Assembly: GCF_006345805.1 (NCBI RefSeq)
Contig: NW_021832226.1
Coordinates: 434,001 to 498,000, forward strand
Direction of reading: 5' to 3'
Length of the DNA: 64,000 nt
From: Octopus sinensis
Taxonomy: Eukaryota
Under the pieces are notes generated by a model that worked only from the letters and a program-made list of their open reading frames with translations, made no database searches and had not been told where the DNA came from. Of the stretch, positions 11,580 to 62,499 are shown piece by piece. Positions within the stretch are counted from its first letter, which is position 1; the number at the start of each line of letters is the position of its first letter. A program made the position numbers and the translations under genes.

Positions 11580-11768
11580 GTTAATTAATTAAAAGCTTCA
11601 TGGGCGGGAAGCCGACGCAATCGAGAAAGAATTAGAGCGTACTATCGCAAGGGATATCCGCTCGAAAAACCATCTCGATTCGCGGGCGTCGCCTGTGATA
11701 GCAGACATGCGGGACCCGATCTCCTGAACGAAGCTGATTGCCTTACTGCCCAAGGAACCGGAAGTCTC
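11580..11768 (-). mobile_element. CRE-like non-LTR 3' tail
   Basis: Minus-strand translation GSLGSKAISFVQEIGSRMSAITGDARESRWFFERISLAIVRSNSFSI, matching the C-terminal pattern of the other CRE copies. Confidence 0.8.
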
Positions 11769-11805
11769 AATTTGAAATTTATAATTAACAAATTAATTTT
11801 ATAAT

Positions 11806-12101
11806 TACGCATGTGCGCTGGCAGAAGAAAGGAAGTTGACGAAGTACGCTGTGCTTCCGAACGTCGTTGAGTTTGTCCCCCTAGCCTTTGAGACCTCCGG
11901 TGTGGTTGGAAAGAAGTAGAAAATCTGTTACGGGGTGGGAGGAAGAATCTCACAGAATACAAAGACCGGAGGGAGACGAGTGGCTTTTCCAGCGCATCTC
12001 GGTTGCAATTCTTCGCGGGAACTGCCTCTCTATCCGCAGTGCTCGTCGTCGGACTAACCCTCAAGTTCACGACATTAATTCTCTATTAATTAATTTGACT
12101 G
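11806..12101 (+). mobile_element. CRE-like non-LTR 3' fragment lacking poly-A
   Basis: AEERKLTKY...FVPLAFETSG...QRISVAILRGN. Nearly identical to 33350-33650. Confidence 0.9.
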
Positions 12102-27499: not shown

Positions 27500-28250
27500 T
27501 CTTTTCACGACAATGAATACAGATAAGAATTTGAGAATAACAAGCCGGACACGACAAAATGAGATAAATCGTTTTAAAGAAAATTGAGGTAGAAAAGCAC
27601 CATACGTACGACATGTTTGCAAGTGAACTGAGAGTAATCCACAATGCCAAAGTAATTACAGTATCATTGGTACGAATATGAAACGGTTTTGTGAGAAAAT
27701 TCTATAAACTGCGATTCAATCGGTTTCAGAGGACCTACACGAGCTTACATTCAGTCGGCGGTTATCCGGAAAACATTGTAGAATATGTGCGTAGAACATT
27801 AATTTGAAATGATCCCACCGGAAGAATGAAAAAAGTCTCGGTTTACAAATGAATTAACGGAGTAAGCTTTTCCATGTGAGTCCATTGAGTCGTACTTGAA
27901 AATCTCCACAGAAGATTACAGCCTTGTAAGAAAAATGAGTAGGCCCATCAAAGAGATTGGTTGTAACTAGAAGAAAAGGAAAATCAATTGAGAATGGACC
28001 CATTAATGGAAAAGGTTGGGTGCTAGCTAGGGTAGGTGCCTGAAAGAGAAATCAAGAGCCTAAGGGTCAGTTTAACGACAGCGTATTAAATGGCAGTTTC
28101 TGTGGAGCACGGAAACAGAGATTCCCTGAAAGAGCCACCTCCTCTCCCTCGGGTTGTTTGTTTTTTAGGAAATTCTCCTACCAATATCAATGAGGAATTA
28201 AGTCGCGGCTTTGCCGAAGATTCCTGAGGATTCGAAGGCAAAAGGGCAAA
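27500..28250 (+). mobile_element. Decayed R4-like RLE 3' end
   Basis: NKPDT and EVEKHHTYDMFASELRVIHNAKV resemble the 12251 ORF. Confidence 0.6.
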
Positions 28251-28612
28251 CTCAAAAAATTCTCAAATGCACAGGTATTTCGTTTTATTTAACTCTTCAG
28301 CCTGAGCACCGGCGAAATAACAACACACTATTAATATATCTATTCGAAAAAACTATTTCTTTTTTTTAAAGTGGCACTATCGGTAAGTTGTATTCCGAAT
28401 CATCAACTGTTGTTTCGTATTTGATATTTATGTACTAAAAAAATAATAATTTATTATAATAAATTTGTAATAGTTTTTTTCTAACATTTAAAAAAGCACT
28501 CATTTCATAATTAATTTTCTATTTGAAGAATAACAATTCATCCGTTAGGAATATTGAACATAATTTAAATGATTTATGTAATACATTTAAAAAAATGACA
28601 TTTTTGCGCTTC

Positions 28613-28755
28613 ACTTACCTGGTCGTGGATGTTTGTTATCACTCAGGCAAGCATCCCATCCTTTAGTCATCCATTGCACTTTGGATCGCTCTGGGGTGTG
28701 GTCGGTTCCAGTCGGGCTGTCCTACGGCGTATTTTTTTCGTGTGCTTTTTGTGCA
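28613..28755 (+). ncRNA. RNU1: U1 spliceosomal snRNA (divergent)
   Basis: 5' ACUUACCUG. Closing helix GUCGUGG/CUACGGC. SL1 GAUGUUUG/CAAGCAUC with loop UAUCACUCAG. SL2 AUCC-AUUGCACUUU-GGAU (U1A site). Short SL3, U-rich Sm site GUAUUUUUUUCG, small terminal hairpin. Confidence 0.9.
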
Positions 28756-28809
28756 TTTTTTACTTAGGCTTTTCCTTTGAGTTTTTTTGCTCTATCGAAT
28801 ATTCCTTAA

Positions 28810-29150
28810 GTTTAAAGATTCCGTCCTAAGATTGGGATTCTACATGCTTGACACATTCTCCAACGGGAACCTACACATGTCGACCCAGGTTTCGCTTCTA
28901 ATCGTCTTGAAGATCTTGAAATCCGGAAGTACGGTCACCTCTCTAGTCTTATTTTCACGCTCATCGCCGTTGAGACCTCTGGGGTTTTTGGCTCGAAGTC
29001 GCTTTGTTTCTTACGTGGTTTGTGGAGAAGAATCGCCAAAAGAAGGTACGACCTAAGAGAGTCCTTTTGTCTTCTTCAACACCTTTTCATTGCCGTAATC
29101 CGCGGCAACTGTTTTGCAATCCGTGAGGCTGGGAGGACGTCCTAACCTGC
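28810..29150 (+). mobile_element. CRE-like 3' fragment just downstream of U1
   Basis: Frameshifted WDSTC..TFS, RKYGHLSS, IAVETSGVFG and IAVIRGNC. Confidence 0.8.
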
Positions 29151-30487: not shown

Positions 30488-30732
30488 GTCGCCAGAATCA
30501 AACCCGGATCTAGAACGGTCAATTGGCTGAAGAGCTATCTATCCATGAGGAGGTCATACATACGATGCGGAAACCGTTTGTCGGAATCTGTCGATCTCAA
30601 AAGAGAGGTACCTCAAGGCTCGGTCTTGAGCCCTTTACTTTTTAATATTTACGTTGAAAGTGTTCTTGAGAAAGCCTTTTCTTCTCGAATCTTGAATTAA
30701 ACATTAAAAAGAGGGAAACAACGCAGAAGGTT
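30488..30732 (+). mobile_element. Internally deleted copy of the 57-60 kb LINE family
   Basis: Matches the reverse complement of about 57780-57615, joined to about 57045-56970. Confidence 0.8.
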
Positions 30733-31880
30733 AATCTGAGGGCCCTTTGTTGAACCTCCTCGATTCGTCTCCTCTTGGACCACGATAACTGCGGACCCCA
30801 TGATTTGCAGACGTAGGCGATAGATGGTTCGAAGTACTGGCGGTAGATATTCGCCAGTACCGGGTGCAACCCGTTTTTCCATATGCCGGATAGAGTTCGG
30901 AGGATGTTCAATTTTTTTTGCATTTGCAAAGGAGGTTGTCTGCGTGTGGGGAGAAACAGAGGTGCATGTCGAGGGTTACCCCTAGGACCGTCTGACTCCT
31001 GTAGAAGAGTACGGACATGTTGTTCAGTTTTATTTCGACTGAAGTCCTTCCCAATCTTTTGTCGGAAGTGAAGAGGAACGTGGCGAACTTCGCCGCGTTT
31101 ACCACGAGCCGGTTGTCCGTCAGCTATAGGTTCAGCCGATCCAAGCTAGCTTGGAGCCTTTCAGAGGCTTTCTGGATGTCCCGGTCCCGTGAGGCTAATA
31201 CGATGTTGTCCGCGTATGAGAGGACAATGTCATTATTGTCAAGGGAGGGAGATCTTCCAGGAATAGGTTGAAAAGGCCCGGGGATAAGGGGGATCCCTAA
31301 GGTACTCCGTTGGGTAGAAGACGAGATTTGGACTTCAAACCATCAAGGCACACCCTTCCCCTTCGTCCACTTAGGAAGTTGAGCTTCAGAGGAAATTCGG
31401 ATTGGGATATCTTCCTTAAGAGAAGCTTCCTCGAGACAGAGTCGAAGGCTTTGTGGATGTCGACGGAGCAGAGCACGGTCTTTTGATGACTCGGTTTGCT
31501 GGCAAAACCGGTACAGATGAAGTTTGACAAGGATTGAAGGTACGAAGACGTGGACTTCGCCTTCTTAAACCCATGTTGAAAAGGTCTTTTGGGTAAGAAT
31601 TCTTCTATTCTGCCAAGAACCGAGCTTTCCAGGATTTTTGACATCGAACATAACAGAGAAATCGGCCTGAAAGATGCCGGGTCCCCTCTTGGTCTTCCAG
31701 ACTCAGGATCGGCCTTATTAGGGCCTGTTTCCATATTGACGGAATCACATTGTTGTTGATTGAATAGTTGAAAATAAATGTTAGGAACCTGACTTCTTCG
31801 ACACCAAAGTTTTTTAATAGAATGACCGGGATTTTATCCGGGCCGTGAGAATATGTCACATGGGCGACTATGTCGCTATG
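30733..31880 (-). mobile_element. Jockey/I-like LINE RT region, decayed
   Basis: HGPDKIP, FRPISLL, QHGFK, VDIHKAFD, NGVP, YADNI and LGVTLD. Confidence 0.85.
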
Positions 31881-32249
31881 GGCAGCCAGTCTTTTACGTG
31901 TTTCTATGGAAACCGCAGAAAAGGTATTAAATATTGAATATAGCAATTTATATATGGAAGAGTGTAGATTAATCAATTATTCTAATTTAAAATTACATTT
32001 GAATTATCTTTTAAAAAGGCTTACCAAAAGTATATTATTTTAACAGCGTGGTTACTCACACTTTGTGATGTCTGGGTTTAAGGGTTACGTCAGAAATATT
32101 AACGAATACAATCAAATTAAGGAAGCGTTAATCGGGATATTCCCGGAGGATATGAATGCTCGAAGCAAACACCGGTTGGCCAAAAAGGCTTCCAATTTTT
32201 GTCAAAAATGTCTGAAGAATCGTCAGCAGAAACATCATTTAATTTCTAG

Positions 32250-32445
32250 TTTGGGTTAAGGTTAGATTTTGAATATTTATGTTGTCACTTTCCAACGTTA
32301 GGGTTTGGGTTAAGGTTAGGGTTAGATTTTGAATATTTATGTTGTCACTTTCCAACGTTAGGGTTTGGGTTAAGGTTAGGGTTAGATTTTGAATATTTAT
32401 GTTGTCACTTGCCAACGTTAGGGTTTGGGTTAAGGTTAGAGTTAA
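32250..32445. repeat. About 60-bp tandem repeat (3+ units) containing TTAGGG/TTAAGG telomere-like motifs
   Basis: GTTAGGGTTTGGGTTAAGGTTAGGGTTAGATTTTGAATATTTATGTTGTCACTTTCCAAC repeated. Confidence 0.9.
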
Positions 32446-32604
32446 AGTTGTTGCAAAAAATTTGATGTAAATTATAATTTGCTAACTTTCTTTTTATCCC
32501 CCGTTTACCCTTTTTGCTCCGAACGTCTCCTGTTTTCGCTCACGTCAAGAACTTTTGGATTTGGATGACGCGGTTACTCATCATTACAGTTACTACTGAA
32601 CACT

Positions 32605-33693
32605 TTGTTCACTGACGTGGGACGTACACGTGCCGCACTTCCACTCCGCTTTGGTGGCCTTGGGGTTCGTTCTTGTGCAGATCTTGCTTTGCCTTGTTAT
32701 CTCTCGTCGATGTCTGCTTCCGGCAATTTCGTTCGCTCTGTTCTTATCAACTCACTCGAACTTGATGAGCTTACGGAATACCCTGTGCTGTTCTCGCCTG
32801 GAGATCGCTCGGACTTGGCCTTCCGGAGATTCCTTCAATACAGAAGAGTTGGGATGTCATCTGGTGTGCACACACTGTTGGAGAGTCTTCGCACGCGAGT
32901 CGACCAGTTGGAACTGGCTTCTTTGAACTGTGCCTGTCAGCCTCACTCAGGAGACTGGCTAAACGCACTTCCGTTGGCGTCCAATGGTCTGCTTATGGAA
33001 GACGAAACTATACGTATCGGAGTGTGTCTTCGACTTGGACTTGAAATCTGCAACCTCACCGTTGTCGCTGTGGTTTTTTGATTCCTTCGAACGGTTTACA
33101 CGCATTGCTGTAGGAGGAGTGCTGGCCGATTTCCCCGCCATGTCCTCCTCAATGAAGTGGTGAAAAGGGCTTTGGATTCTGCGGGATTCCCATCGACCCT
33201 TGAACCTATTGGGCTCTGCCGCAGTGACGGAAAGGTCCTGACGGGATGACTATATTCCCTTTAGAGGAGGAAGGTCTCTGTTTGGGATGTAACTTGCGTC
33301 GACTCCTTTTCAGATACTGTGCTCACAGGAACAGCCAGTACACCAGGCTACGCATGTGCGCTGGCAGAAGAAAGGAAGTTGACGAAGTACGCTGTGCTTC
33401 CGAACGTCGTTGAGTTTGTCCCCCTAGCCTTTGAGACCTCCGGGTGTGGTTGGAAAGAAGGTAGAAAATCTGTGTTACGGGTTGTGGGAGGAAGAATCTC
33501 ACAGATACAAATGACCGGAGGGAGACGAGCTGGCTTTTCCAGCGCATCTCGGTTGCAATTCTTCGCGGGAACTGCCTCTCTATCCGCAGTGCTTCGTCGT
33601 CGGACTAACCTCAAGTTCACGACATTAATTCTCTATTAATTAATTTGACTGTATTAAAGTCCCTAATATAATTAAAAAAAAAAAAAAAAAAAA
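32605..33693 (+). mobile_element. CRE-like non-LTR retrotransposon 3' kilobase with poly-A
   Basis: [46 protein letters not shown]; A-run at about 33673-33692. Confidence 0.9.
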
Positions 33694-33899
33694 TTTGCTA
33701 ATGTTGCAATTTATATTATCAAAAATAAAAATAATTCACATTATAATTTGCTAATGTTGTAATTAATTTTACTATTTTAAAGCAAGCATGGTTCAAATAT
33801 AAAACATCATTTTCTCAAAAATTTAAAGTTCAATCATTAGTTCGCATCGTTTGCCTTTTTATTAGTTGGCCTTTTAGTAAATATTTGCTATGTAGTTGC

Positions 33900-34960
33900 C
33901 ATGGAAATACGTAAAGGCCAGGTTGCCCATAGGGGTCTGATCACCCACGTGACAGAATACGATGATTTTGTAGAGTGCAAGGTATCTTCCACCTTTTTAC
34001 CGAGAGGAGAGGTTCCGCCCGTTTCTTTAGGCTTCTGTTAGAGGGGAGTGAATCAGATTTCCTGTGCTCCTTGTGTGCAGTTTTCGCATAGAATTTGATG
34101 AGGTTGTTCACGTCTTTTTGATCGTAATCTTCGGAAGATTTGGGAGCGTCCCCCCTGGCCACGTGCCGAATGGCTTTCCACACTTCTCCCGTTGAACGAT
34201 TACGGTTCACGGTAGTAAGAATGCGTTTCCATTTCAGATAGGTGTGCCTGTGTTCACTAGTCTTCAATTCCTTGTTCAAATATCTGATGCGGGTAATTAT
34301 GTCGGAAGACATTCAGTTTGACTTCTTGAGGCGATTTCTCTCCTTGGCCAGACCGGATCTCCTTCGGTTACAAGCTGCATGAGGTGGACGTTTTAATATA
34401 GCCATTGCTTTCCCTTTCAGAATAATCTTCGAGAAGAAGCCAATGGCCTTGTCAAGCTTTAGTCTTGTGGTCAATATCTCTTGGAACCATGGCCAGTTGG
34501 CCGCTTTGTAATTGTAAGGAATGGAAACTTTCCTGGTGACAATTTCTCTTTTGATCTTTACCGCGAATCGGGTTGTGGTCGCTTCTCATTTCATAGAGGA
34601 CTGACCACTTCGTAGATGATGCGAGGGATGAAGAGCATAGAGTTAAATCGGGTGACGTAGGTTTGTCAGTCACTCTGAATGGGGTTCTTGTGTTCCTCGA
34701 TGGGTCGTTCAGGATTGTTAAAGAGTCCAATTTGGAAAGTAAAGATTTCCCTCTCCTATCCGCCAACTGATTTGAAAGCCAAAAGGTGTGTTTCGCATTG
34801 AGGTCTCCGCATAAGATGACCCCGTCTATGCGTGCCAGATTGAAGAGAGTTGGAAGGCTATAGCTCCTTGGACAAAAGCCGGGAGGTGGAATGTACATGT
34901 TGACGAGCCATAAACGTCCCTTCGTTGTGCCAAGCGAGATTCCGATTAACTCGGAAACCT
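33900..34960 (-). mobile_element. LINE fragment: APE endonuclease and linker
   Basis: NMYIPP, CGDLNAKH, SPDLTL and SDHNPI. Confidence 0.85.
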
Positions 34961-36240: not shown

Positions 36241-36586
36241 TTGTTATCGGTTGAACCCGTTGACAACGGAACACCGAGATTTAAAGATTTGTGAGAAAAA
36301 AATTAAAAAACACAAATACTGCTTAATATTTCAATAACTACATTTTTTATTTCTTACCTATTCTTTCGCACATCTGTCTGGATAAAGATTTAGCACTAAT
36401 CATTTCTACGAAATCAATTTTTACTATGTTCATGAATTTTATTTATATTTTATAAATTATTATTATTTTTTATTTTATTTAATTAAAAAAATACCTTTTT
36501 GTATAAAATCGTTAGTTTCTGCCTCTTGTTGGTTTATTTTTATATTGCTATTGCGACAATATTATTTGATCATATCTAACGTAGAA

Positions 36587-37096
36587 ATGGAACATGATGA
36601 AGGAAATGAAATTTATGACCTTTTCCCGTATATGAATCGCATGTTGTCTGAAGACTTTGAACTTGGTACCAACATGATTGACGCTACTTTCGAAATCGAA
36701 CTTGATTTTTCTACATTATACCAATTTGAAGAAGAATTATATTCTCCATATGCATTTTTTTCTGACATGGTGACATCAATGGTTGACCAAGATGTAGCAT
36801 CCGCGTTTATTCATTTTAGGAATCAAAAAGAATTACAAAACAAAGAATTAATTCCTTACTTAGTAAGACTAAAAAATACAAATCAATTCTTAAATCTCTC
36901 AGGACTTTGAAGACAGAAAAAGATTACGATGTTTGTTCAATTTGCCTTGAAATGTACAAAAGAAATTCGAAAATTGTCCAATTCACTTGTTCTCATTTTT
37001 TCCATTTATCTTGTGCTAGGAAATGGATTTCAGTTTGATTATTTTTATACTATTTAGAACAATCTTACCTGTCCATATTGCAGAGCTGATTTGTAA
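36587..37096 (+). CDS. Small C-terminal RING-H2 protein, paralogue-like to 24897-25514
   Basis: A 38-nt intron after ...TSM restores the frame to CSICLEMY...TCSHFFHLSCARKWIS|NNLTCPYCRADL*. Confidence 0.85.
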
Positions 37097-37479
37097 CTTG
37101 ACATTTTTCTATTTTGAATTTGTTTCCTTCCATAGGAATTAAATAATCGATTAATTTTAAACTTAGTACTAGAAATGATAGTTAAGTGTAGCCAGCTCCT
37201 ATGCTCTCACGCTAATGTCCCAGTGGCGTAAAGACTGATTAGTTTGGCTACCACACTTTCTTATGTGATAACGGATTTGGATGATCCTCACGACATTCTG
37301 AACTAAACAAGAACATCTGTCGGTCTCTCGGAAATGCTGGATTCAACTTTCAATTTAAACCTGTAGAAATCCTTGCCGATGAAAACAAAAGATATGATGG
37401 GATGATTACGTTTTTTAAAGGGGAAAGTTTCTATTTTTTGATATTTTTTTAAATAAACATTTTTTAATGAAATAAAATC

Positions 37480-37780
37480 AGGCACTAGTAGAGCTATATC
37501 GGAAATGGGGGGTCAATCCGACGAAGACGCACTGCGGATCGAGAGGCAGTTCCCGCGTAGAATCGAGAGCCAGTTCGCCTCCCTCCGGTCATGGGTCTTC
37601 AAGGTCTTCAATGCATACGCAACAACCTCTCGGCCTCCTTACCGACCACGCCAGTGGTCTCAAAAGCAAAAAGGACGAACTCTTACTCGCCAGAAAGGAA
37701 TACGTAACACACGCCGATACGGACGGCTTTGTCCTCCAGGAGCAGATCATTAGACTCCAGTAGGAGAGCATATAACCAAT
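37480..37780 (-). mobile_element. CRE-like 3' fragment
   Basis: ILRGNCLSIRSASSSD*; similar to 52255-52600. Confidence 0.85.
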
Positions 37781-38122
37781 CCTCAAAATGAGGCTGGAAA
37801 GCGCAATTTTCTTTGATACAAGAATTTTAAGAATCAATATCCATAATAATAAATAGTGGTAAATAAATTGAAGAAATAAAATGAAAATGCAATAAAATTT
37901 CGTTTTGGGCTCTCAGTTAAATTTCAACGAAAAAGCTTATAGTTAATTTCCGAAAACGCTATTAAAATTCAATACTTGGAACCTTAATGATAATATTTAT
38001 GAATTAAGGATAATAAGCTAGGAAAACCCTATATATTATTGAATTACTGATTTGATTTGAATACTCATAAAAATTATCTAAATCTAATGAAGTTGTTAAA
38101 TGAAATTGTATTAGTTAATGAA

Positions 38123-41100
38123 TTATTGTCTTTTACAATATTTGGCCAATCCTATCAGATTCACATTTATTCGTTCAACGACATTTGTTTTAAGTACTAA
38201 TATAACACGTGCGGAAACATTTGTTTGTTCACTCTCGTTATTTTCCAGAACATTATTATGTGGATTCCATGTTATTCTAATCACTTTAAACGAATTAGCT
38301 TCAACTAAACCCTACATTTGCTTCACATAATTATTTTTTACCTTGACTGTATCTATTTGAAATCCCATTGATATCGATGGTTGAAATTCCTCAATTACAA
38401 ATTCTGCATTCTATTGATAAAATATTTATTTTCATATAACTTTTTGTTGACTTACTGCCATTGACCGAATGCAGTGAACAAATAAGCTACGTTCGGAAAG
38501 GTCAAAGTTTTGACCATTATGATACGAATAAAAGTATAAAACGATTGAGCTTTCTTCTATGTATAAACATTATTAACTATAATACGTTTTGTTTCCAAAA
38601 TTCTATGTATTTCATTATCTTCAGAGATTTCCTCATCGGTTGTTACGTACAGCAAATTTTCTTTAGCTTTCCCTACAACTCTAAAGTCGATATAATTCAT
38701 CTTCACGATAAGGAAAAAAATTGTTTTACATGCTCAAATAATATTCTAAAATAGTCGGAAAAGCTGTTGCTGCTTCGGTCTGCAAAAAATGTCAACTTCA
38801 ATTGAGTTTCAGAATCTACTTAGTGGATAAATTTAGTTTACTCTCTAAAATTTGATCTCCACGAGGAGTTAAGTCGAAAACAGTTGTTCCATTATTATTT
38901 TGACTTCCTTAAATAATTAAAAATATAAAAACCGACAAAATGTTTTACTTTATCATAATCGCGAAATTCAATTTCGGTAGACCTACTTAGTTGTAATATT
39001 TTGTAAGAAACGTTGATTCCAACCGAATTATTTTTTAGCTAAAAATATTTTATTCTAGATTTTACTGTTATTATTTTTTCGACCCAATTATTAACAAGTA
39101 TCGCTCCCATTGATAAAAATCCAGTATTCACAGAACATTCAATAGATGGAGTAACACCTTCTCCAGTGACTGATATAATACAGCGAGATATTTTGTAGTC
39201 AAATTTGATGATATCATAATACTTAAATTAGTTTTAATAATATTATTTACTCCAGTTTCTTCTCTTGGTCTAAATCTTAATTTAATGGCACATTCATTTC
39301 CGGGAGGTATAGGTCTCAAGACATCTCTAATTGAAAAAACTTCTTGTTCGTCAAATGCAGTTGTTGTCAGCTTAAAAAATCGTGTTTCAAAACAGACCTG
39401 CAATGTTTTCGACGATGTGTTTAGAAATACAAGTTTTTTGTAAGTAGCCGTGTTAATGCATTTTCTTCCAAAATCAATATGTCGATTTCCTTCTGTAGAA
39501 ATTAAAAGTAACTCTGGTCGAATTACGGGGCATGATATTTCCAAATATAGTGTATATTTATCACTAATAAATATTTTAGAACAATTAACTTGTATGTCAA
39601 GTTGGTTTCATTTTGGTTTATTTCGTCCGAAATGAAACAAGGGACGTGCCAAGTTTTTACACTTTTTTCAAATTTGCTTAAAATATTATATGTTTCGTCT
39701 CTGACTTTTAACCAATTTAAGAATTAAAACTTTAATAATTTATTTGAAATTGGTTTATGATGATTGGATTCCACGTATTCTTCGGTATTATTCGACTAAT
39801 TTTTTTAATTTGATAATACCTTTTTAGAAATTAGTCGGTTATTTGTTTCACTTTGATATATTTCAGAAATTTCATTTTTCTCTGGAATCGGTTTTAATTC
39901 TATGTTTATTGGACATCTCTATTGAAATATTTATTTGAATATACTTCGCCTACTTTCACTAAACCAACTAACGGATTGATATTAAATGGAAGATTTGTAT
40001 CTTCTGGGATCATAAACTGAAATTTTCTATCTCCGACATTTGCTGGTTTGTCTAAACTAAAAATATAAACTGAAATACCATTTCCTATTTTTGGAAGACT
40101 GTGCAAGAACTCGTTGGTATCGACATGGTCATTTACAATACTCAATGTCAATATTGAAATATCAAAAAGAGCTGTTGGCTTAAATTGTATGAGATTGTGT
40201 GACAACTTCAACGGTGACTGAACTCCAACAGCTTTTATAAAAAGTTCAAAAGACCTTTATAAAGTAATAAAATAGTTGCACCTTCCATTCTCATTTTTAT
40301 ATATTATTTTTTCGTTATATAAACCAGCACGAGGAGCTGAAAAAATAAAATGTATTTCAATTGACTGTCCAGGAAGAACTGTTCCATAGCCATCATTAGG
40401 TTGAACTTCGACATACTAAATCAAAATCGATTAGTCGAAGGACCTCAGGTTTTTGTATGAAGCCATATTCAAGTGGTATAAGTGACTCGTTCCGTAAATG
40501 TGATGATCGCAGAACACTTTCTACATTCGTACAATATCCAAAGTCAATTTCATTATCATCCAAAGTCAGCTTATCATCGGTTATTATTGCATTAACATAA
40601 AATTCAATTTTATGTTTCTACTATAAATTTGATTTAATAAAACTTGATTCTTGACATTCACAATTACTGGAACTTGCATTATTGATAATTCGTTGTGAAA
40701 ATATTTAGATGAGAGGTTCAATATAGATAGTCTCGAATGTTTAATAAAAATGAAACTTTGGCAATAATTTTACTTGAGCTATAAAAGATGATTTTGCTTG
40801 AATGTATCCCATAGCTGGTTTTACGCTTAAGAAATCTGCAAAGTCGTCCGGTACTTTGAAATTTATTTGCAACGACGTATTCGCCCTGTTCATTATTTAA
40901 AATGGATACCGGTTATTTAAAATTACCGAATCTTGATATAACTTATTGACTGTGCATATGTCAAATTGAAGAGTTGTATTTTTAATATAAACTGGCAAAT
41001 CGGAAGCGTTTCCTTTAACCACGAAATCTATCTATCATTTATTAAAAAAATTATTTTACAGCGTATTGGTCATCTGGATAGTCCGTAAAAGAAATAGTGA

Positions 41101-43524
41101 ATTCTTCTTCGTATTCTTTCGCAATATTTGGAGACCAGGTGATTAAAATTTCAATATACGAAAATGGCTTCAAGTTTCCAGTTTCATTTTCAAAAATTTC
41201 GAAAGTATCTTAAATAAAATTTATAAAAATACTTTCTAAATTGAGCTCTGTCATATTACAACTTTCTACAGCAGAACCATCTGAATTCGTTCCATCGTGG
41301 TTAACGTTTAAATCTTTTGAATTATTTAATGTCTGATTTTGTATAAACAGTGATTCGGCATTTATAGATTCTATATTCCTTTCTTTTCTTTCAATTTGAA
41401 AGTCGCTTGCTAATGCTCCCATATTTTTTAGTTTTATGGATTTAATTCGAGTTTCCCCTATTATTAAACTACCAAATTCTAATGTTCGATCAGTCACTGA
41501 TGGCTAATAGTAATAATTTTCAAACATTCACCAAAAACGTCTTGGTCTTACATATTAACGGGATTTCAAAAATTCCATTAGTGCTACTGAAGGATATTTT
41601 TCCAGACAAATCTTCATTTATCTATAATGAATAGTCCATTTTTAAACGAATACTTTAGGTTTGAAAGACACACTGAACTCCCATTCCATTCCTGGTGATA
41701 TTTTTCCTGGTATTTTAAAACTAAGTTGGAGGTTAAAAATAGATTTATGACTCAATATGAATAAAATCATTTAATCTTGTATCGCCAGTCACTTTTAAAA
41801 ATCGGCATGAAGATATATTTGTTGACGTGTTTATTAAGGAAACTGTTTTTATATATTTTTCACCGACGTCAAAATCCTTTTAAAGTTTTACTAAAAGGAA
41901 AATACTAAAAATAATATTTCGTTTGGTTTGCTTGTAAACTCGACTTCATTCACACTGTTTAGTTCTTTATTTGTTTTTTTACTGTCGTTGTTCTTAAAAT
42001 AATTAACAATAAAATTGCTTTAAATGTTTCAAATTTACGCGACTCAGCAATTTCTTCAAATTCCGACAATTTTCCCCATAGACCAGAAAATTCAGGAACT
42101 GAAATATTTTTTCCTAGATTTGTATCTAACATTGAAATGAATAAAATAAAACCATTGGAAATGTTAAAGCAATTATTTTGATTTTCAGAAAAACATTCAT
42201 CGCTACTTAGATTACTAAACTGTTCAACTTCAGGAGCGTTCAGAATAGAAAGTCTAAGGGCGTGGATTTAATTGAAAAATTTCTCATACTTGTTAATGTA
42301 TTTCGAATAATCATCGTGGAATTTAGTCTCGCGATTTTTCATTTCGATTTGATTCTATCTCAAATTATATCATTTGTACTTTATTTTTAACATCGTCTAT
42401 TTTAGAAAAATCATGTATTTTAGTAAATAAATAAGGTTGTCGCTCCTTCATTCGATTCTGGTAATTACGTTCATTCGTCAGTTTTGTTGCAACGTTAACA
42501 CAAGCAAGGTTTTGTTTTAACTTGAATTCTCTATGTATTAATACTTTTATATGGATTAAACCTGGCTTTTTTATTTCTTTTTTCTAGTTCTTTTTGTTTA
42601 CATAATTCATATACAGGATTTTTTCCTTCAGAAATCATTTTTGAAATTAAAAGTTTATTTTTTTGATTGGTTTTTTCTTTCATATGATTTTTATATCGCT
42701 GAGTAAATTTCATATTTTCCTTTAAATTTTACTTTTATTTTTAACTTTCATTTGAGCTAAATTTGATTGAAGACTTTTAAAATTATTGATTCTCTGATCG
42801 AACTCTTTCTCGAGAATTTCTAATTCCGCTGTTCTAGCGTTAAATATTCTAAAAATTTATTCTAAGCTAAAAATCACTTTTTACAACTTTTCTGATAGTA
42901 AGGTTTGATAAAATTTTGGGATTCATGTCCATTTTTCTTAATGTTAGTACTTTTTTCAACTTTTGATCTTTTTAATAAAATTTGAGTAATGCTAACGGTT
43001 TTTTCATTTTATCATTTTTAAATGAAATTGTATTACTAAACACTGTTCTTGAAAAATCGTTATTTTTGGTAGTTTGATTATAACCAACATTTTTCTTTAA
43101 GAGTTCTTGATCCATCTGAGCTTTTTTTAATGTTATACTATTGGTTTGACCACAAAATATGAAATACTCATTAGCTTCTATTTCTTTTTTAAGATTTATT
43201 TCCATTTCCAAATGTTTATTTAGTTCTTTCATTATGCAGTTATATCTTTTTGAAAGGCGTTCCTTCCGAACCCTAAAATAAAAAAAATATCATACATGTC
43301 TTCAGATTCTAAACTTTCTTTTAATTCCAAAAAAGTCTGATCTCGTTGTGATTCTAATTCATTTATGTTGTTCTGACAATCATTTATTACATTACTAATT
43401 TTTGTAACTTTTTTATACATCATTACCTTAATTTTTCATGATTTTTATTGATTTCGACTATTAAATTGGAACTTTCTTTGACAATTTTTCTTATATCTTG
43501 ATTTCCACTCATATTTATCACCAT
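38123..43524 (-). CDS. CFAP74: Cilia- and flagella-associated protein 74-like (N-terminal coiled coil plus Ig/ASH-like repeats), many tiny introns
   Basis: KDFDVGEKYIKTVSLINTS...DFIHIE|FKIPGKISPGM..FKPK|INEDLSGKISF matches the recalled CFAP74 KDFDVGK..DFIHVDFDPPG..FKPMINKDLEGNISF. Also LEFGSLIIGET and IDFGRKC. Start uncertain. Confidence 0.75.
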
Positions 43525-43649
43525 GGTCTTTATATTTTGTTTCCAAAGAAATGAATTAGTACTATTAAATATTATTTAATTTTCAATATAATATTTAAAA
43601 GGGAAATTCAGCATTTAAAAAATTATTGTTCAACAGTTTTTTGAAAAAT

Positions 43650-44271
43650 TTTACATTAAGAATAATTTATAAGTTCAGTGAATTATAACAGGAGAGAAGA
43701 TGAGTTTCTTCGAATAAGCGCGAGCTAGATGGAGAAAATGAGTAGCGGAAATTATCTCCCAAATAAGAGGAAGACCAGAATTTTATGAGAAAATACTAAT
43801 CTGACTATTTCCATCTCCTACGTTCAGGCTAGTTAGCTCGACGTCGAATAGAAAGCTAGTCAATTCCTAGACATTTCAATATCTCTTTAATTGTTATGGA
43901 CTCTGTCTGCAAGATAAAGTGTGAAAATTTTTAGAATTGACAACTCGTGACAGGTGTCAAGCCCTAATCGGAGTTGCACTCAGATTTTTATTACCACATT
44001 TCAAAAGAGCGGGAATGAAGGACGTCAAGGCACAAAGCTGAGCATAAAATAGCAAATGAGCGAAACTAAGATAATAGTCTTTGTTAGAGTTTAAACTAGC
44101 TTTGAAAAAGATTTTCGTAATTTCCCTCTTACAAAGAACGCTGAGAGCAAGAATTGAGAGACATACCGGTAGCGCCCATGCGCGGTCATAAAAATAGGTT
44201 TTGAGGATTTTTTTAAAGTTTTTTAAAAGATTGCTACATAAGAAGCCGTATACTGATGGTGAATTATTCAA
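43650..44271 (-). CDS. Probable intron-containing gene of unknown product
   Basis: 104-aa ORF plus a downstream reading FDVELTSLNVGDG...LIWEIISATHFLHLARAYSKKLIF. No family recognised. Confidence 0.35.
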
Positions 44272-44490
44272 GGAGGTAATTCAGATATTTGCAAATGAAT
44301 GTTGTATTAGCACAATACAAGACATTTCTAGAAAATTAACGCTCGTTTTATAGACTCTAAAGGATTTCTACGCTGATACGACTCTTGATTATAATTCTGC
44401 ATCCCGTACATAACCCTTATACACTGTAGTTCGTGACGGAAATAAAACTCTTAGTAATAACAGAAATAAATTGTAATAATCCCCGATAAC

Positions 44491-47949: not shown

Positions 47950-50900
47950 CTATGATGAATTGGGACCTGTACTGATAATAGTTGAGAATAAATGCTCAAA
48001 TGAGAAATTTTTTGTGTTAATAATATTCCCAACTGAGGGTATTTAAAATTATGTTTAAAGTACTGTTTTATCTCAAAATGACAAATGTAAAGAATAACCT
48101 AATAATCAATTTTTACATCATAATGATCACAATATTTTACAAATACTTATTTCTTGGTTAATTAATGTTGACCGGTTCATAATGAGATACGGTTGATACG
48201 ATGTTATTAAAAGATCGAATTAATATTCTGATTCAAAATAATTACAATAAATGCAAACGTTCCGAATTAATGATGACTTTAATTTTGAAAAAATGATGTT
48301 TTATATTTGAACCATGTTGTTAAAATAGTAAATTATTTACAACATTAGCAAATTATAATGTGAAATTTTTAATGTATAAATGCAACATTAGCAAATTACA
48401 AGTTTGTAACAATAACTCTAATCTTAACTTTAACTTAACTATATGATTTCAACGTTATTTATAAACATATTCATCATAAAAAGACAATAAAGAAAACAGA
48501 CCATAATCCCTGATTACCTATAACCCTGACGCAACCCGATAAATGATAACTGACGCTGACCTAATGAATTAACCCTAACCCTAAAACCCTAATGATAATG
48601 ACCCTAATGTAATAATGATAACTGACCCTAACCTAATATGATTAACGGCATTCACATTTAATCGATAACGCCACTTACGGTCGTTTAACGGCTCGTATTC
48701 ATGGGCTCGTATTCAAGGTCACAATTAATTTCTACCAATATATAGGATTCAATGAAAGACTCGGTGTCAAGCTATATTGAACAAAATTCAACATACGGAA
48801 ATGAAATCATATCCGTTATTTCTCGAATTAAATAAACCATACAAAACTATTATTCTTAATTACTGAATTCTTTTTTACTTTACTAGTAGTCATTATTAAT
48901 TTTTAAATCAAAAATAGAATTGAAAACTCGTGATATTGTCATAGCAAAATATCAATTACAATCGATAACATGGATTTATTTTGATTAAATCGTTACTTAT
49001 TTTATTTGTTGTGAAGATTTGAAAAATGCTAATCATACTTGTTTTTATTAGTTCTGTCAAAAATAACGACTATCATATTCATGTTGAGGTATTTTACGAA
49101 TTCTTACAAGTTTTGTTTAGCAACAAAATAATTATAAATGGTTAAAAGTTACAAATTGTTCTAGTCGTTGTGGCTCCGGATTTCTTATTGAACAACTTAA
49201 ATGCAAGTATTTTTTGTTCCTCATATTTCTAAGTGATAAAACTATATGTGACCGAATTCAAATGAGATACTCAGATTGTAGTCAAAAAGTAAAATTGTTA
49301 AATTATATTGTTTCAGAAATGCATCGGAGAAGAACAAGATTTTTTAGAAATGCAGTGCTCGCGATTTAATTCTGTTCGATTTTCAAACAAAAAATATAAT
49401 TGGAAATCACTGATTTTGCAATCTGAACAATGCAGACTTTATTGCTTTCCATCTAACAAGCAATTCTACAGCCTTCTATCAGATAAAGTACTAGATAACA
49501 CTCCATGTCGCAATCCACTACCTGGGCTTTGTATTAATGGAATTTGTCACGTATTAAATTACTAAAAAATTAATACAGCAATATGAATGTGACAATAATA
49601 CTGAAATATGTCATCCATGTAATAAACATCCCTCAAAATGCAGAAGAATTGAAAAAAACATTTTAGTGAATGACCAAAAATCTAGTTGGAATTTTAAAAT
49701 AAGTTAGAATATCGTGACGTTGTCTTTCTTCCGTTAGGTGCGTATGAAGTCTATGTTGAGATAAAAAATAGAATACCTTCATGTTTTCTTGGTTATCATA
49801 ATTCAATTTTTAAAACATAAAAGCACTTAGAAAATTAGATGGAATTGTTGTCCTTAATTCAAACTGGACTGCCACTCAATTGGATGTTATACAGAATGGA
49901 AAAAAGTCATATATTCACTATAAATGTGGAGTCAATTCAGAAAACATAGAAGTCATTCACTCGCAAGCACCTTTAAAGAATAATTATTTTGTAATGGTTA
50001 CAAATAGTAGTACAAAATAGATTAGATTGCCGGATCATTATCAAATAAAACACTTAATATTCATTATTCATATACTTATGATTTTGAAGATATTAACAAT
50101 AATACTATTAAATATAAATGGAAATTCAAAAATATTGATGAGTGTTACAGTGGATGTCATGAAAGTAATTCTTTAAAAAATTCGATAGAAATCATAAAAC
50201 TGGAATATTTTTGCCAAGATATATATTCGAAATCAATCGTGTTTGAAAGTTTGTGTGACATTAGAAAACGACCAGTTGGATTTAAAAAATGTCAAACAAA
50301 TTGCAGTATCAAGTTTAGGCTTTAAATATATTTGTATAGATGGGAAATTTCAAATTGGTCAATATGTGCTTATTCATGTCCCTATCTTTACCGAAAAAGA
50401 ACTATTAAATGTATTGATGCTCTTAACAAAACAATTTTTCCAAACAAAAAATGTGCACAAATTTACGGAAAATATATCAAATCGAAAGAAAGTTGTCTCA
50501 ATAATTCTAAATATACATGTCCTCGTTTTGATATAACAAAGTGGTCCGAGGTAATTATTATATATTCTTATAATTTTTGAAAATCATATTGATTATTCGA
50601 TTATAGTGTTTTAAGTGGAGAAATAACCAGGAAATAAAAATTGGTTTAGTAAAGTGTCTTTCAATAGAAATTGAAAAAAATAAAACTCATATTTTAGACA
50701 GAAATGAATGTTTTTCACCGAAACCTAAAACTATTCAAACTTGCAATTTTAGGCAGAATCAAGTAGAAACAGCTGGAATGACATCATGTGAATATTCAAT
50801 TTTCGGGTGTTGTCCCGATGGTGTCAATCAAGCTAAAGGATTGAATTTTGAGGGATGTCCGTTTTTAAAAAGTAATATAAATTTAATTTTATTAAAGATT

Positions 50901-51914
50901 TTAGTATGTGCTTGATATTGCCTGAGAAAGGATCATGCTCGGGATATCAACTACGTTGGTACTACAATATTAAAACTGGAGATTGCAAAACATTTGTTTA
51001 TGGCGGTTGCAAAGGAAATGAAAATAATTTTAAAACTCTTTTTTCGTGTAGAATGACCTGTGAGTATCCACTTTATCGAGGTTTAGACACTACTCAATAA
51101 TTAATAGAACCATGCCAAATGGCGAACCCCAAAGTTAAAGAAAATCTAAAAAATAAATTTTCATCATTATTTTATTATGATATTCATATTTCGAAATGTA
51201 AACAATTAAAGCACGTCGATTTTTCACCACAAATTAATTTTAATGTTTTCACAAATTTAAATGAGTGTGAAAACAAATGTATTCATACGGAAAATAAAAG
51301 TAATAAAATGGTTAAAGATTATTTTTATTAGAATTTGATTGTGTTGAGAAACTTAATTACGGAAATTGTAATAGTTTCACGGAAAAATGGTATTTTGATA
51401 TAAAAGAATTGTCGTGCAACAAAATCAATTATGGCGAGTGCAAAAAGCATGCAAATAACTTTGACACAGATTTTGAATGCCGGGAAGAATGCCTAACACC
51501 ATCAGTATTAGGTTTGAAAAATTAGAAAGTATAATATAGGATTGTGTTATCAACCACCAAGGTATGGAAATGGAAATAAAAGTTTAAAAAGTTGGTATTT
51601 TGATACAAAAACTGTACAATGTACCAAATTTATTTATTCCGGAGCGGGTGGAAACCAAAACCGCTTTGATAGTCGTGGTGAATGTATACAAGTATGCGAA
51701 AAATCATTTCTTAATAATCATGGTATTTACTAATTTAACTATAAAAGGAAAGGAATGTTTTTCAGTTGCTGATTATGGAAATTGTAAAGGAAAAGTATTG
51801 CGATATTATCACAAGAATGGAATTTGTCATCCTTTTTACTATAGTGGTTGTGGAGGCAATAATAATAATTTCATAAATATTAACGAATGCAAAAAATATT
51901 GCATTGATATCTGA
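47950..51914 (+). CDS. Papilin-like ECM protein: TSP1, ADAMTS Cys-rich/spacer, TSP1-like, CCPDG repeat, about 5 Kunitz domains
   Basis: CSSRCGSG, QCSRFN...CRLYC...LCINGIC, GCCPDGVNQAKGLNFEGC, and Kunitz patterns such as GSC..YQLRWYY...CKTFVYGGCKGNENNF...C...C. Start uncertain. Confidence 0.82.
48170..48722. repeat. Intronic insertion with TAACCC telomere-like tract; related to the 32.2-33.8 kb repeat
   Basis: TAACCCTAACCCTAAAACCC at about 48570. 48320-48395 is the reverse complement of 33694-33780. Ends TGTTGACC / GGTCACA. Confidence 0.65.
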
Positions 51915-52254: not shown

Positions 52255-52975
52255 ATTTTTAATAAAAGAAAATCAGAAACTAGCAGAGCTATATCAGACC
52301 TGGGGGTCAGCCGACGAAGACGCACTGCGAATTGAGAGGCAGTTCCCGCGTAGAATAGAGACCGAGACGCGCTGGAAGAGCCAGCTCACCTCACTCCGAT
52401 CATGGGTCTTCAAGGCAATTTTATCGTCGAGCATTCGTAAAAACCTCTAGGCTCCTTACCGACCACCCCAGTGGTCTCAAAAGCAAGGGGGACAAACTCG
52501 TAAGCGCCTGAAAGGAGAGTGTATTTCGACATGCTGTCCAGGACAACATCGTCTCGGAAAAAGAATCTACACAGGTCACGTCTTAAACGAGTGACCTACC
52601 TCCCTTGAAAGGGAACGTCGGGACGTTTCCCGTCGTTCCGAAGGAGTCCAACAGGTTCCACTGTAGACGGGAATCCGGTGGAATCCAAAGCCCTCTTCAT
52701 GACATCATTGAGAATTGCATGGCGCGGCCAGCACTCTTCTTGCATGACAACGCGTGTAACCCGTTTTTTGAGATTATCGAACCACACCGACAACAATGCG
52801 GTTGGCATATGTCCAATCCCAGTCGCAAACAAACGCAGATACAGACAGCTTCATCCTCCAGAAGACCATTAGACGCCAGTGGGAGAGCATTTAATTGATC
52901 CCCAGAATGAGGCTGACAGGCGCAGTTCAACGACGCCAACTGCATCTGGTCGGCTTGCGAGCGAAAACGTTCCAC
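52255..52975 (-). mobile_element. CRE-like 3' fragment
   Basis: [25 protein letters not shown] and ILRGNCLSIRSASSAD*. Confidence 0.9.
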
Positions 52976-55560: not shown

Positions 55561-56909
55561 TTATAAGAAAAAACATGTTCAGTTTTTATTTTTGTTCACT
55601 GTATATTGCATTATTTTTAAGTGGTCACTTTTTTTCTGCATTAAGTGTATTTATGCATCAAGTATTTCTCAATAGTGGCCAGATGAGTTTTTTCAGCACT
55701 TCGGCCTGAAGAAACGAAAAGCTTTTTTTGAAAACATTACTTCGGTTTTTTAAATCAGCAAGAAATCCAAAAAGCATGCGTTCACTTAGAAGAGAAATTG
55801 AGCTCAATCACAAACTTTTGCATCCAAAATAAAATTATTTTAGCCTTCTTTTTTAACTGCTCATTTGCTTGCCGTTGTTTCGGCGAATGAAAATCCATAT
55901 TAGCATTTTCTCGGAAACCAATCGAGGTGAAGAGTCTTAATGAATTTAACGACGATGGAGAATTAGTTTTGGTTGACGGAACGTTGAATTCTAAGGAACT
56001 ATTTAAACTTTTTTGCTGTTTGTGAGTTGACAGGATTTGATCGTAGAGCTTTGTGCGAAAGAGAGGGAACTCAAAAGAAATGTCAGGTCTTTGCCTTAAT
56101 GAGCTATAAACTGATACTCTATTTTGTAATAACGGAGATTTTGATTGGAAAATTCATTCTTCCTATATTTAAATCAATAGCTATGACTGATTCTATGAAC
56201 AAAGTTCATGAGAAAATGTGACTGGCAGTTCCTGTTCATGTAAAAATTGTCCAAATGTATATGCGAGTAATAACACGAATAGCATACGAGAGTTTGTTTT
56301 ACATGTGATGGTGAAAAAGCTGATGATATGAAGATGAAATCACGGAAGAGGCCAGTGCTAGGAGCGACTCAAAAACAGCAAAAAATCCCAAATTGACTCG
56401 CAGAGATATTCACTTTGTGCTCGAAGATATTTAGCACTTTGCTTGCACGGAGATAATGTCCTGGGAACGTAGTTTTCCCTGTTAATGCCATAACACTTAT
56501 TCCAACACTTGTAAGGATTTCAAATATCAGAAAAAGTTCTCCCGGACATTACAAAACACCTGAGTACAAATAAATTGTCAAAATCCTTTTCCCCCAAAAT
56601 GATGAGGCTCTCCAAAAAGCTTCCACCTAAAAAACGTCGTGATACGAGCTGGCTTTTCAGCGGATATCGTTCGCGATATTACGTGGAAATTGCCTGTCCA
56701 TCCGCTTGGCGACTCATCTAATTTAGTTAACTTCTGTTTTATTTTGACCTTAATTGAACTTCGGTTTAAAAAAATAAATAAAAAAAACCTAAAAAACTAA
56801 CATATTAAGAATATCCTCAATGCCAATATATCATTATCGACTATGAATCAAAATTAAAGCTGTTATCAAATTTATCAAATTTGATTTTTCCTCAATATGA
56901 ATGAATTAA

Positions 56910-59900
56910 TTTTTTTTATTAAAACGGAAAAGCCGAAAAAAAGAGAAAGAAAGTTAATGAGACAACGTATACCTCTTCTCCGTTGTTTCTCTTTTTTTTT
57001 ATTTCGAGATTAGAGAGGAAAAGATTCTCTCAAGAACACTTCCAACCGTTTCCGTCGCGTCTTCCATCTCTTGAGGGATGTGTTGGTCCAGCTGGAGTCC
57101 ATTTGCCAATTTGATAGCATATTGTCTCGTCTTTTCGAGCTTAGCGATAATGCCATCCCTCTCAGCAGTAGGGTACCATCCCTCGAACCCGTAGGTAAGC
57201 AATGGTTCGACGCACGTTTTATAAACATATAAAAACGTTTCCGGACAAAGGTGGAAGTGAATTATGCTCCTGAGAATTTGAGCGCATTTCCTTCTCCTCG
57301 AGTCGATGTATCTGAAGTAAGAACCCTTGGATCCAACTTCAACCCCAAGGTATTTCAAGTTCTCCGTTACTGTAAACCCATAAAGGTTTCTCGACGGTTT
57401 TCGTTTAGTTCCCTGTTTTGCAATCCAAGTGGCGGTGCACTTTTCTTTTCCAAGCGTCAGTACTTTTGATATGCACCACTCTTCCACTCTTGTCACGTAT
57501 CCTTTTAATTTCCTCCACGAGATGTCTTTTCTCCACGAAGCATCCGTTATTAGTATGTCGTCCGCGTAGATCATGAGACGACTGGTAGGATCTTTCGGTT
57601 TTGGAATATCAGCAACGTAAATATTAAAAAGCAGAGGGCTCAAGACCGAGCCTTAAGGTACCCCTCTTTTGAGATCGACAGATTCCGACAAACGGTTTCC
57701 GCATCGTATGTATGACCTCCTCATTGATAAATAGCTCTTCAGCCAATTGACCGTTCTAGACCCGGGTTTGCTTTTGGCGACACTTTCCAAGAGGTCAAGG
57801 TGCCATACGCTGTCAAAAGCTTTTGAGACATCGAGGCAGATAGCAATAGTCGCTGTATTGTTAGCAAAACGAAGCGAGATGACTTTCTCGAGTTCTCCGA
57901 AACAATCTCCACATGATCTTTTTCGTTGGAATCCCCACTGCTCCGCTGCAAGTGCAGCTGATTCCTCTACGAAGTTCGAAAGTCTTGTGAAGAAAATCCG
58001 TTCCATAATTTTAGAGACGGAGCTTATCGGCCTATAGTTCTCTCCATGGTCCTTTATTTTTCCAGGCTTTGGAATCATACGTACGATTGACTTTTTCCAA
58101 GAGTCCGGTACGTATCCAAGTCTCCAGCTTGCATTGTTTAATGCGGTCAAGTATCGTAGGAGAATAATTGGAGCATGTTTGAATACAGTAATTGGAATGT
58201 AGTCATGGCCGGGTGCATTGTTCTTGCAGCTCATAATTGCGGCATACGTTTCTTCCAACGTTATGTCTCTGCACAGTGGTCCCGTATAACTCAAATTAGC
58301 TCGCAGACTTCTCTGTGCCTCACATATAAATTCTTTCGGAACCATGTCGATCGGATCCACCTCTTGAACTTTTGTCAGTTGACTTCGCAAATGTGAGGGA
58401 ACTTCATCGAGCGGGATAGCTATTCCTTCAGTTGTTTTTAGTTGGATCTCTTCTCCTTTATTCTCCATATTACTTAGTCTGTGGAAAACCTTCCAAAAAT
58501 GAGGGTTTTTCTTATTCAGTTTCGAGCATTGACTCTTCCAAGCAAGGTCTGAATGTTTTTTTGCGACATCATTTATCTCTATTTTCACGGTACGAATCTT
58601 ATCCCGAAGACGAATACGATCTATGGGGTCACTGCATCGTCTTAGCTTCTTTTCAAGGTTTCCTTTCCAATTTATAAGTTTTCCCAAAGATTCGTCTATC
58701 CGGGTTTTTCTGTTAGTATTTGACATGATGTATTTTCTGATTGAAGAATTTCGGAGAAAGTCCAGTATAGCTTCTCTGAGAATTTTATCAAGTTTTTCAA
58801 TTTGTATATTCTAAGAGATGTTTTCTATTGGATACGGTATCAAATGCATTTTCATTGATATCTCGAAGTCAGACCAGATTGTCCGAGACGTATCATATCC
58901 GATGAAAAGATCTTCGCATATCGTAGATGATGTTCGCATACATAAAGATCACTACCAATGTTTATCTCAATTCTTGGTATGCTGCATTGATGAACAAGAT
59001 CACCCGATACGAGGAAAACTCCAATACAATCCTCTCCATAACAAGAGAAATGGTTTGGTTCTCGTGAGGTCAAAACACTAAAGCCGCAGTTCTCCGATAA
59101 TCTGAGGAGTATATGACCGTCCGAATTTGTATTAGCACATCCGTACGATGTGTGTTTTGCGTTAAGGTCTCCTATTAGAATTCCTCTATCATTGTTTTGG
59201 AAAAATTCTTCAATAAGATTTGGATAATTCTTCATTGCTTTGGAGTACATAGCTCCTACAGATATCCATCCAAGGGATGTTAGTAGTTTCAATGTAATCA
59301 GTTCGCACAAATTTTGTTCGACGATTTTTAAGTCCCTCACCATCAGATTGTCTTTATAATATATGGATGTCTCAGTGCCAGCCACTGCGTCAGGTCGCCA
59401 TGGGATATCAATCGACTGAAAACCATGGATTTTGTGATGCTGCTTTCCCTTAAGCTTTGTTTCATTAACAACCAATATGTCCATGTTTACCTATCTAACC
59501 AAGTAGGTTAGCTCCGTAGCCCGTTTCCGAATTGACCGGGCGTTGATAAGCGTAAAAACGCTCATCTCGTCAAGTTTTGGTGACTGTCCTCCATAACGAG
59601 CGCACCAGTTCCAATAAATTTTTAAACGTTTTTTTAGTCGTCGTTTTCGATTTAAGATGGAGATCATCCAGTTTTGCTTTTAAATGTTCAATTGCACTTG
59701 TTTTTTCGTCTGCCACCAGTATGTTGCATGGTGGTTGTCCCGGGATTGATTTAGAAGTGTCCCCGAGTTTTAAAGATGCCATTCCTTTTTTGGGTTGAAT
59801 CATATATTCGGTTGTGTTTACGCCTTGTTCCAACTTTAATTTTTGCGTAGATATAGTGAATGTCGCAGTTTTCGAAGTGTTTGACATGGATTCATAGATA

Positions 59901-60055
59901 TCGTCAATCTGAACTTGAGCGTCCACGAATTTTGTACTTATACTAAAGTTCCATCCTTTCCAGGTATTTTGTACTTTAACTTTTTTTGTTTCCGACAAAG
60001 ATTGGTATTGATGACAGCTGTCAATCTGGGCTCGCTTTCATTCTCGACTCGCGAC
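56910..60055 (-). mobile_element. Near full-length APE-RT LINE (short ORF1 plus disrupted ORF2)
   Basis: ORF1 59998-59570. ORF2 begins LINARSI and contains GDLNAKH, APGHD, YRPIS, LDVSKAFD, RGVP, YADD and YLGV. A-rich 3' end. Confidence 0.88.
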
Positions 60056-62289: not shown

Positions 62290-62420
62290 CAAACAACTTA
62301 ATTATTTAGTATTTAATTAGCAGCAGAGGATAAGATGGAATGGCAATTCCCACGCAAGATGGCTATTGATATGGCTTGGAAAAGCCATGTCCGTTCCCGA
62401 TGATCATTTCTCCTCCTGCT
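62290..62420 (-). mobile_element. CRE-like tail
   Basis: RRRNDHRERTWLFQAISIAILRGNCHSIL. Confidence 0.8.
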
Positions 62421-62499
62421 TGCCAGATCCCCCAGTTTAATAAGGAATATCTAAATTGTATAAGCCTGATCAAATCTATAATCTGAATGAAACTGCAAT

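Follow-up and report, generated by a model that had tools for sequence, protein, structure and literature searches.

The U1 locus and its predicted fold

Within the window, by which we mean the whole 64-kb stretch of DNA that was analysed, a relaxed Rfam scan returned a single RNA-family match, a U1 snRNA. The Rfam U1 model RF00003 aligned end to end (model positions 1-166) with positions 28611-28757 of the plus strand at a score of 58.0 bits, with E = 6.8e-14 for the local stretch (551 bases searched) and E = 7.9e-12 for all 64 kb against all 4227 Rfam families. The covariance search with RF00003 that the preliminary description had proposed thus did produce a match, though at a score under the gathering score of the family (69.5 bits); a default scan at gathering thresholds returned nothing for the U1 locus, and the relaxed scan was needed. 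The gathering threshold is a curation cut-off and not a biological feature. No tRNA genes were found within the window.

Folding of 28611-28760 by energy alone, independently of the model, gave a minimum free energy (MFE) structure of -48 kcal/mol (z = -3.8), and none of 200 shuffled sequences was as stable. In the fold, the 5' arm is unpaired, a closing helix of 5 bp leads into a four-way junction that bears three stem-loops, and an 11-nt single-stranded stretch with the Sm site is followed by a terminal hairpin of 6 bp. The full-length match and this independent fold, with all of the elements listed before, bear out the complete U1 snRNA of the preliminary description. The mature RNA would most likely extend from A28613 to about 28757 and be 145 nt long (145-147 nt depending on the start) instead of the about 143 nt first given. 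G-U pairs make up 13 of its 44 pairs (30%). The features of the gene and its surroundings are as follows:

28081..28316, minus strand: C-terminal fragment of a transposon (ETSG...RGNC motif), 5'-truncated; left flank, found by tblastx, context only
28586..28595, plus strand: TATA-like run TTTAAAAAAA, candidate promoter element at -27 to -18 from A28613, in A/T-rich DNA
28613..28757, plus strand: U1 snRNA gene, from RF00003 and the MFE cloverleaf (Rfam alignment 28611-28757)
28613..28621, plus strand: 5' splice-site pairing arm ACUUACCUG, 9/9 bases canonical, unpaired in the MFE fold
28622..28626, plus strand: 5' strand of helix H, GUCGU, forming 5 bp with 28724-28728 (ACGGC)
28627..28656, plus strand: SL1, 10-bp stem and 10-nt loop UAUCACUCAG at 28637-28646, the predicted U1-70K site
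28657..28698, plus strand: SL2, loop AUUGCACUUU, with the exact U1A loop motif AUUGCAC at 28673-28679 in the 10-nt loop position
28700..28722, plus strand: SL3, 8 pairs, 3 of them G-U
28724..28728, plus strand: 3' strand of helix H, from the MFE fold
28731..28740, plus strand: Sm site A-U7-C-G, single-stranded in the fold
28740..28756, plus strand: SL4, 6 bp, 3 of them G-U, loop UUUUU, 15 nt fewer than the consensus
about 28880..29150, plus strand: another diverged fragment of the left-flank transposon type, 5'-truncated; right flank, found by tblastx, context only

SL3 retains the same eight pairs as the RF00003 consensus with a single 1-nt deletion, and 15 of the 20 model positions deleted in the Infernal alignment fall in SL4. 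The earlier view that SL3 and SL4 are both short and rich in G-U pairs therefore holds for the length of SL4 and for the three G-U pairs found in each, but SL3 is of normal size.

The 5' context of the gene reads TTCACTTACCTG, with TC rather than AU before the arm. As read from the sequence, a start at A28613 is plausible, and TCA at this putative start fits a YYA(+1) initiator. In such A/T-rich DNA, the TATA-like run and the initiator together would be a faint sign of a promoter. Two unrelated, high-scoring U1 genes in metagenome contigs, L024 (122 bits, at position 8812) and L117 (105 bits, at position 1633), likewise have TC ahead of ACTTACCTG, and in both a TATA box lies 30-32 nt upstream of the A. 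These two genes suggest that U1s starting at ACUUACCUG form a natural, though minor, class. No clear snRNA-type PSE or 3' box was recognised at the U1 locus, and neither the window nor L121, a related contig piece, yielded further snRNA genes for a promoter comparison. The run of seven T inside the gene argues against polymerase III.

The two flanking transposon fragments lie head to head, and the U1 gene sits within the roughly 530 bp of A/T-rich DNA between them, with about 290 bp of non-transposon DNA upstream and at least about 100 nt separating it from the downstream transposon homology. Neither nucleotide repeats of the locus within the window (blastn) nor a flanking direct repeat longer than 8 nt that could mark a target-site duplication (k-mer search) were detected, and the locus has no A-tail. 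With no A-tail, no target-site duplication and no 5'-truncated LINE fused directly to the gene, we saw no sign of a retro-pseudogene or a LINE-snRNA chimera. The U1 gene is overlain by a pseudo-ORF of 66 aa, for which a homology search gave no match; exact look-ups of five window ORFs, two of them at or beside the U1 gene, likewise gave none.

Structural constraint and comparison with other U1 RNAs

Base pairs were counted from the parsed Infernal alignment, in which 39 of the 46 consensus pairs are represented by a base in each strand. Despite differences from the RF00003 consensus at 42 of the 78 paired bases, 35 of these 39 pairs are standard (14 are as in the consensus, 7 differ from it in one base and 14 in both), and 4 are broken. 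Random placement of 42 changes left 17.8 +/- 3.0 standard pairs and never more than 29 in 20,000 trials. The observed count is somewhat inflated, as the alignment was fitted to the model structure; the independent fold agrees with it. Judged from the sequence, 35 standard pairs where about 18 would be left by chance indicate that the lineage of this U1 has evolved under structural constraint. Decay of a canonical U1 copy cannot give such a pattern. The single-stranded motifs are intact as well, including all nine bases of the 5' arm, AUUGCAC and the core of the SL1 loop.

The RNA shares with metazoan U1 (RF00003; human RNU1, 164 nt) the arm ACUUACCUG, helix H, the four-way junction, a 10-nt SL1 loop with AUCAC..AG, AUUGCAC in SL2, an Sm site and a 3' hairpin, and it is about 62% identical to human U1. 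In contrast to the human RNA, it has A-U7-CG instead of AAUUUGUGG at the Sm site, TC instead of AU before the arm, an SL4 of 6 bp instead of about 10, a length of only 145-147 nt, and a G-U content of 30% of its pairs.

We then set the gene against U1 sequences from the environment. A metagenome scan with the pattern ACTTACCTG..ATCANNNAG..ATTGCAC gave 120 loci, from which 100 distinct sequences passed a check of the SL1 stem; a sample of this panel was verified with Rfam, and L009 and L069 were false positives of the pattern. The two bases before ACTTACCTG are AT in 88 of the 100 and TC, as in the window U1, in 2. Positions 34-35 of the SL1 loop are GA in 55 members of the panel and CA, GG, GC, UA or others in the rest; the UC of the window U1 is absent from all 100. 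Its first loop base is U, where 96 of the 100 have G. The Sm run of the panel comprises three U in 56 sequences, four in 1, five in 42 and six in 1, so that the seven U of the window U1, with C before G, form the longest run in the comparison. The deviations of the 5' context, SL1 loop and Sm run that the preliminary description listed are all present on direct reading. Two U1s of 144-147 bits (L030, L086) have AUCACUAAG loops. A U1 with the AUCACUCAG loop had no match in bacterial or archaeal genome contigs, nor in viral contigs.

The human U1-70K loop is GAUCACGAAG, and the window loop differs from it by G28U, G34U and A35C, while A29, U30, C31, A32, C33, A36 and G37 are kept (numbering of PMC4383343). 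In the crystal structure of the human U1 snRNP, the A29-A36 pair closes the SL1 loop, U30 contacts Leu175 and Asp177, C31 and A32 stack on phenylalanines of the RNP motif, C33 and G34 are held through stacking and through salt bridges to their phosphates, and G28 is flipped out and stacked (PMC4383343). In SL4, the human protein SF3A1 reads a GCG/CGC stem and a UUCG loop (PMC8833184); the window SL4 has neither.

Low-scoring U1s of about the same length also occur elsewhere. The environmental loci L037, L064 and L084 carry U1s of 145-149 nt that score 47-78 bits and lie within snRNA/5S/tRNA clusters, and environmental U1s inside snRNA clusters score 46.7-66.7 bits, as low as the window U1 or lower. 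Their source organisms are unrelated, and no member of the panel exceeds 67% identity to the window U1. The clusters are compact: L064 (1-2022) and L084 (1-1882) hold U5, U4, three or four U1 variants, 5S rRNA and tRNAs within 2 kb, with some U1 copies at 46.7-47.1 bits beside copies at 78 bits, and L089 packs U1, U3, U4 and SRP RNA into 1.2 kb.

Short introns and the source of the window

The context of tiny introns, which the preliminary description had reported, was confirmed by a papilin-like gene at 50026-51911 (plus strand). Its introns measure 27, 56, 23, 27, 32, 25 and 25 nt, the length of 56 nt being tentative, and its spliced product contains four Kunitz domains (Pfam E = 4.8e-56) and one TSP1_ADAMTS domain. 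Because splicing yields intact Kunitz and TSP1 domains, this is the best-supported of the genes. Its donors are GTTTAG, GTAATT, GTATGT, GTAATA, GTATTA and GTATTT. A second multi-exon gene, at 38100-44300 (minus strand), has introns of 24-41 nt, some of which were mis-called by the intron finder in the 38-41 kb part. It has weak similarity to ASH / Cep192-D4 domains (E = 0.006) and is possibly a ciliary, hydin-like gene; its largest exon had no detectable homologue among 5.8 billion proteins. Adjoining it is a small RING-finger gene at 36386-37057 (plus strand; CSICLEMY...CSHFFHLSCARKW) with a putative 25-nt intron.

Taken together, 14 donors were called in the window. They are invariant at GT alone, have A at +3 in ten cases and match CAG/GTAAGT at 4.6 of 9 positions on average; the calls are heuristic, made without a transcript check, and all 14 enter these figures. 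This composition agrees with the reduced "GTa" donor logo of Dicyema japonicum and of myxobolid myxozoans (PMC13644364). Animal introns of less than 30 nt were documented genome-wide only in 2026, in a study that looked at U2, not U1, in myxozoans only, and stated the recognition of such introns to be open (PMC13644364).

The window has about 34% G+C and is dense in non-LTR retrotransposons and in transposase of the Tc1/mariner type. One of its LINEs (56897-59992, minus strand) is 94% identical in DNA to L121 (9497-12614), with 95% protein identity in the reverse transcriptase (RT) ORF. The matching RT model is LOC115229389 of Octopus sinensis, an uncharacterized RefSeq entry on the unplaced 428-kb contig VCDQ01013128.1 (GCA_006345805.1), and 21 kb of this contig share transposons with the window at 92-98% nucleotide identity. 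D. japonicum was collected from O. sinensis, its host, and has a genome with 36.7% G+C, 49% repeats, many LINEs and a mean intron of 38 bp (PMC6736024). Given the tiny introns in animal genes together with transposons that match a contig of the octopus assembly, the window is probably DNA of a dicyemid, a parasite of the octopus kidney. Since the window carries animal genes with 23-35-nt introns, contig VCDQ01013128.1, and perhaps the window too, is probably dicyemid DNA inside the octopus assembly; the window may in this way come from parasite DNA within that assembly. Sharing of transposons between host and parasite is the alternative to such an inclusion. A myxobolid origin was judged less likely than a dicyemid one, given the transposon match to the Octopus sinensis contig and the possibly ciliary ASH-domain gene.

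Interpretation of the U1 gene

We consider it probable, on the sequence evidence above, that a fast-evolving animal with tiny introns, most likely a dicyemid, has a working U1 gene at this locus and that the gene product would act conventionally. RNA polymerase II would start at or near A28613, and the transcript would then be capped. The Sm ring would assemble on AUUUUUUUCG, U1-70K would bind the SL1 loop and U1A the AUUGCAC of SL2, and the free arm ACUUACCUG would pair with the first few bases of each intron. Since the donors hold little more than GUA, base pairing would add just about 3-5 pairs, with protein contacts and the very short span of the intron supplying the rest. What is unusual about the window U1 is, in our judgement, its lineage; the gene itself is of an ordinary kind and not a re-engineered one, and its deviations are as compatible with general fast evolution and A/T pressure as with adaptation. 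We found no description of a dicyemid U1 in the literature searched. The locus supplies a concrete U1 sequence for the lineage, one that is missed at standard Rfam thresholds, and it shows a 5' splice-site arm that stays canonical while the donors have decayed to GUA. It is of use for annotation, as a probe in RNA-seq or cap-IP studies and as a starting point for experiments on the recognition of tiny introns, and does not by itself establish a new mechanism.

Several points speak against a functional gene and for an inactive or minor paralogue, that is, a pseudogene or variant U1, with the working U1 located elsewhere and maybe more canonical. The score of 58 bits lies below 69.5; four pairs are broken, G-U pairs are many (30%) and SL4 is truncated; TC replaces AU at positions 1-2; and the gene is solitary, between two transposon fragments in repeat-rich DNA. 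Many variant or dead U1 copies are common in animal genomes (PMC10870369). Against these points stand the full length of the RNA, with every functional motif intact, the absence of the hallmarks of retroposition, and the 14 pairs changed on both sides, which are not attainable by decay of a canonical copy. Because of these double-sided changes, the divergence of the parental U1 would be recorded even in a dead copy. We therefore regard the paralogue as unlikely, though it deserves to be kept in mind.

The preliminary description went further and proposed that U1 had been remodelled for tiny introns with degenerate donors. A functional U1 specifically adapted to 25-nt introns, in which an arm shorter by 2 nt, an altered U1-70K loop, an Sm site of U only and a minimal SL4 would alter the contact between U1 and U2 across a very short intron, appears improbable to us. 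Its best arguments are that SL4 is the sole strongly reduced element and lacks the GCG/CGC-UUCG features read by human SF3A1, and that the U7 Sm run and the UC at positions 34-35 occur in none of the 100 other U1s. A short SL4 also accompanies introns of 18-23 nt in the Bigelowiella natans nucleomorph (PMC6461891). The U1 of that nucleomorph, in a genome whose donors show little beyond GU, resembles the window U1 in its cloverleaf, its fully conserved 5' motif and its strongly shortened SL IV; however, with 102 nt and no recognisable U1A site it is far more reduced, and it belongs to the remnant of an algal endosymbiont and not to an animal nucleus, with expression shown by small-RNA sequencing (PMC6461891).

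Several observations run counter to remodelling. The nine bases of the arm, ACUUACCUG, are unchanged while the donors match poorly, and a canonical arm means that there has been no co-evolution with the donors. The situation differs from that in Entamoeba and Mastigamoeba, whose U1s are likewise divergent, needed a relaxed covariance search and belong to a lineage with transformed splice signals, but whose pairing arm has changed (ACAAAC, ACGUAC) to fit atypical donors (bioRxiv 10.1101/2022.06.08.495308). The main U1-70K contact bases are kept, and the changed loop positions 34-35 vary widely in ordinary U1s, with GA in only 55 of the 100 environmental sequences. SL3 is normal, and only the short SL4 and the U7 run stand out; TC before ACTTACCTG recurs in two high-scoring U1s, and other environmental eukaryotes have below-cut-off U1s of about 145 nt. 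The ciliate Stentor coeruleus, with introns of 15-16 nt, shares a conserved arm (ACUUACCU in Stentor), and its U1 is conventional, reportedly conserved in sequence and structure with no shortening noted and with conventional U1 core proteins (PMC9505925). Moreover, one sequence cannot separate adaptation from drift.

A more specific form of this idea is that the whole dicyemid U1 snRNP has been reshaped for spans of about 25 nt, with a start at A3, no bridge to U2 of the SF3A1 type, and a U1-70K that has co-varied. We hold this to be a doubtful proposition. If it were true, the RNA would start at A3, which would bring the cap up against the 5' splice-site helix; the bridge to U2 of the SF3A1 type would have been dropped by the minimal, G-U-rich SL4, and U1-70K would have co-varied with the altered loop. 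The parallel to SL IV of the Bigelowiella nucleomorph would then hint at a steric rule that holds for ultra-short introns in general.

That the fold resembles U1 by chance, or that the locus is a fragment of a mobile element derived from U1 (a SINE or a LINE-snRNA chimera), is very improbable, for E is 8e-12 and no other copies exist in the window or in L121. A 5'-truncated transposon fragment on the same strand does follow the gene at a distance of about 100 nt or more, but there is no target-site duplication, no A-tail and no direct fusion of U1 to transposon sequence.

The transposon type that flanks the U1 gene is common in the window. Its C-terminal region, (A/P)FETSG...WLFQRISVAILRGNC.SIR, occurs in many diverged copies and has no Pfam match; further copies of the ETSG motif lie at 11604-12061, 33349-33611, 37468-37572, 52303-52447 and 62334-62538. 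A minus-strand LINE at 30642-34898, with its endonuclease at 34452-34898 and its RT at 31297-31976, seems to be interrupted by an ETSG-motif element nested within it on the plus strand at 32605-33640.
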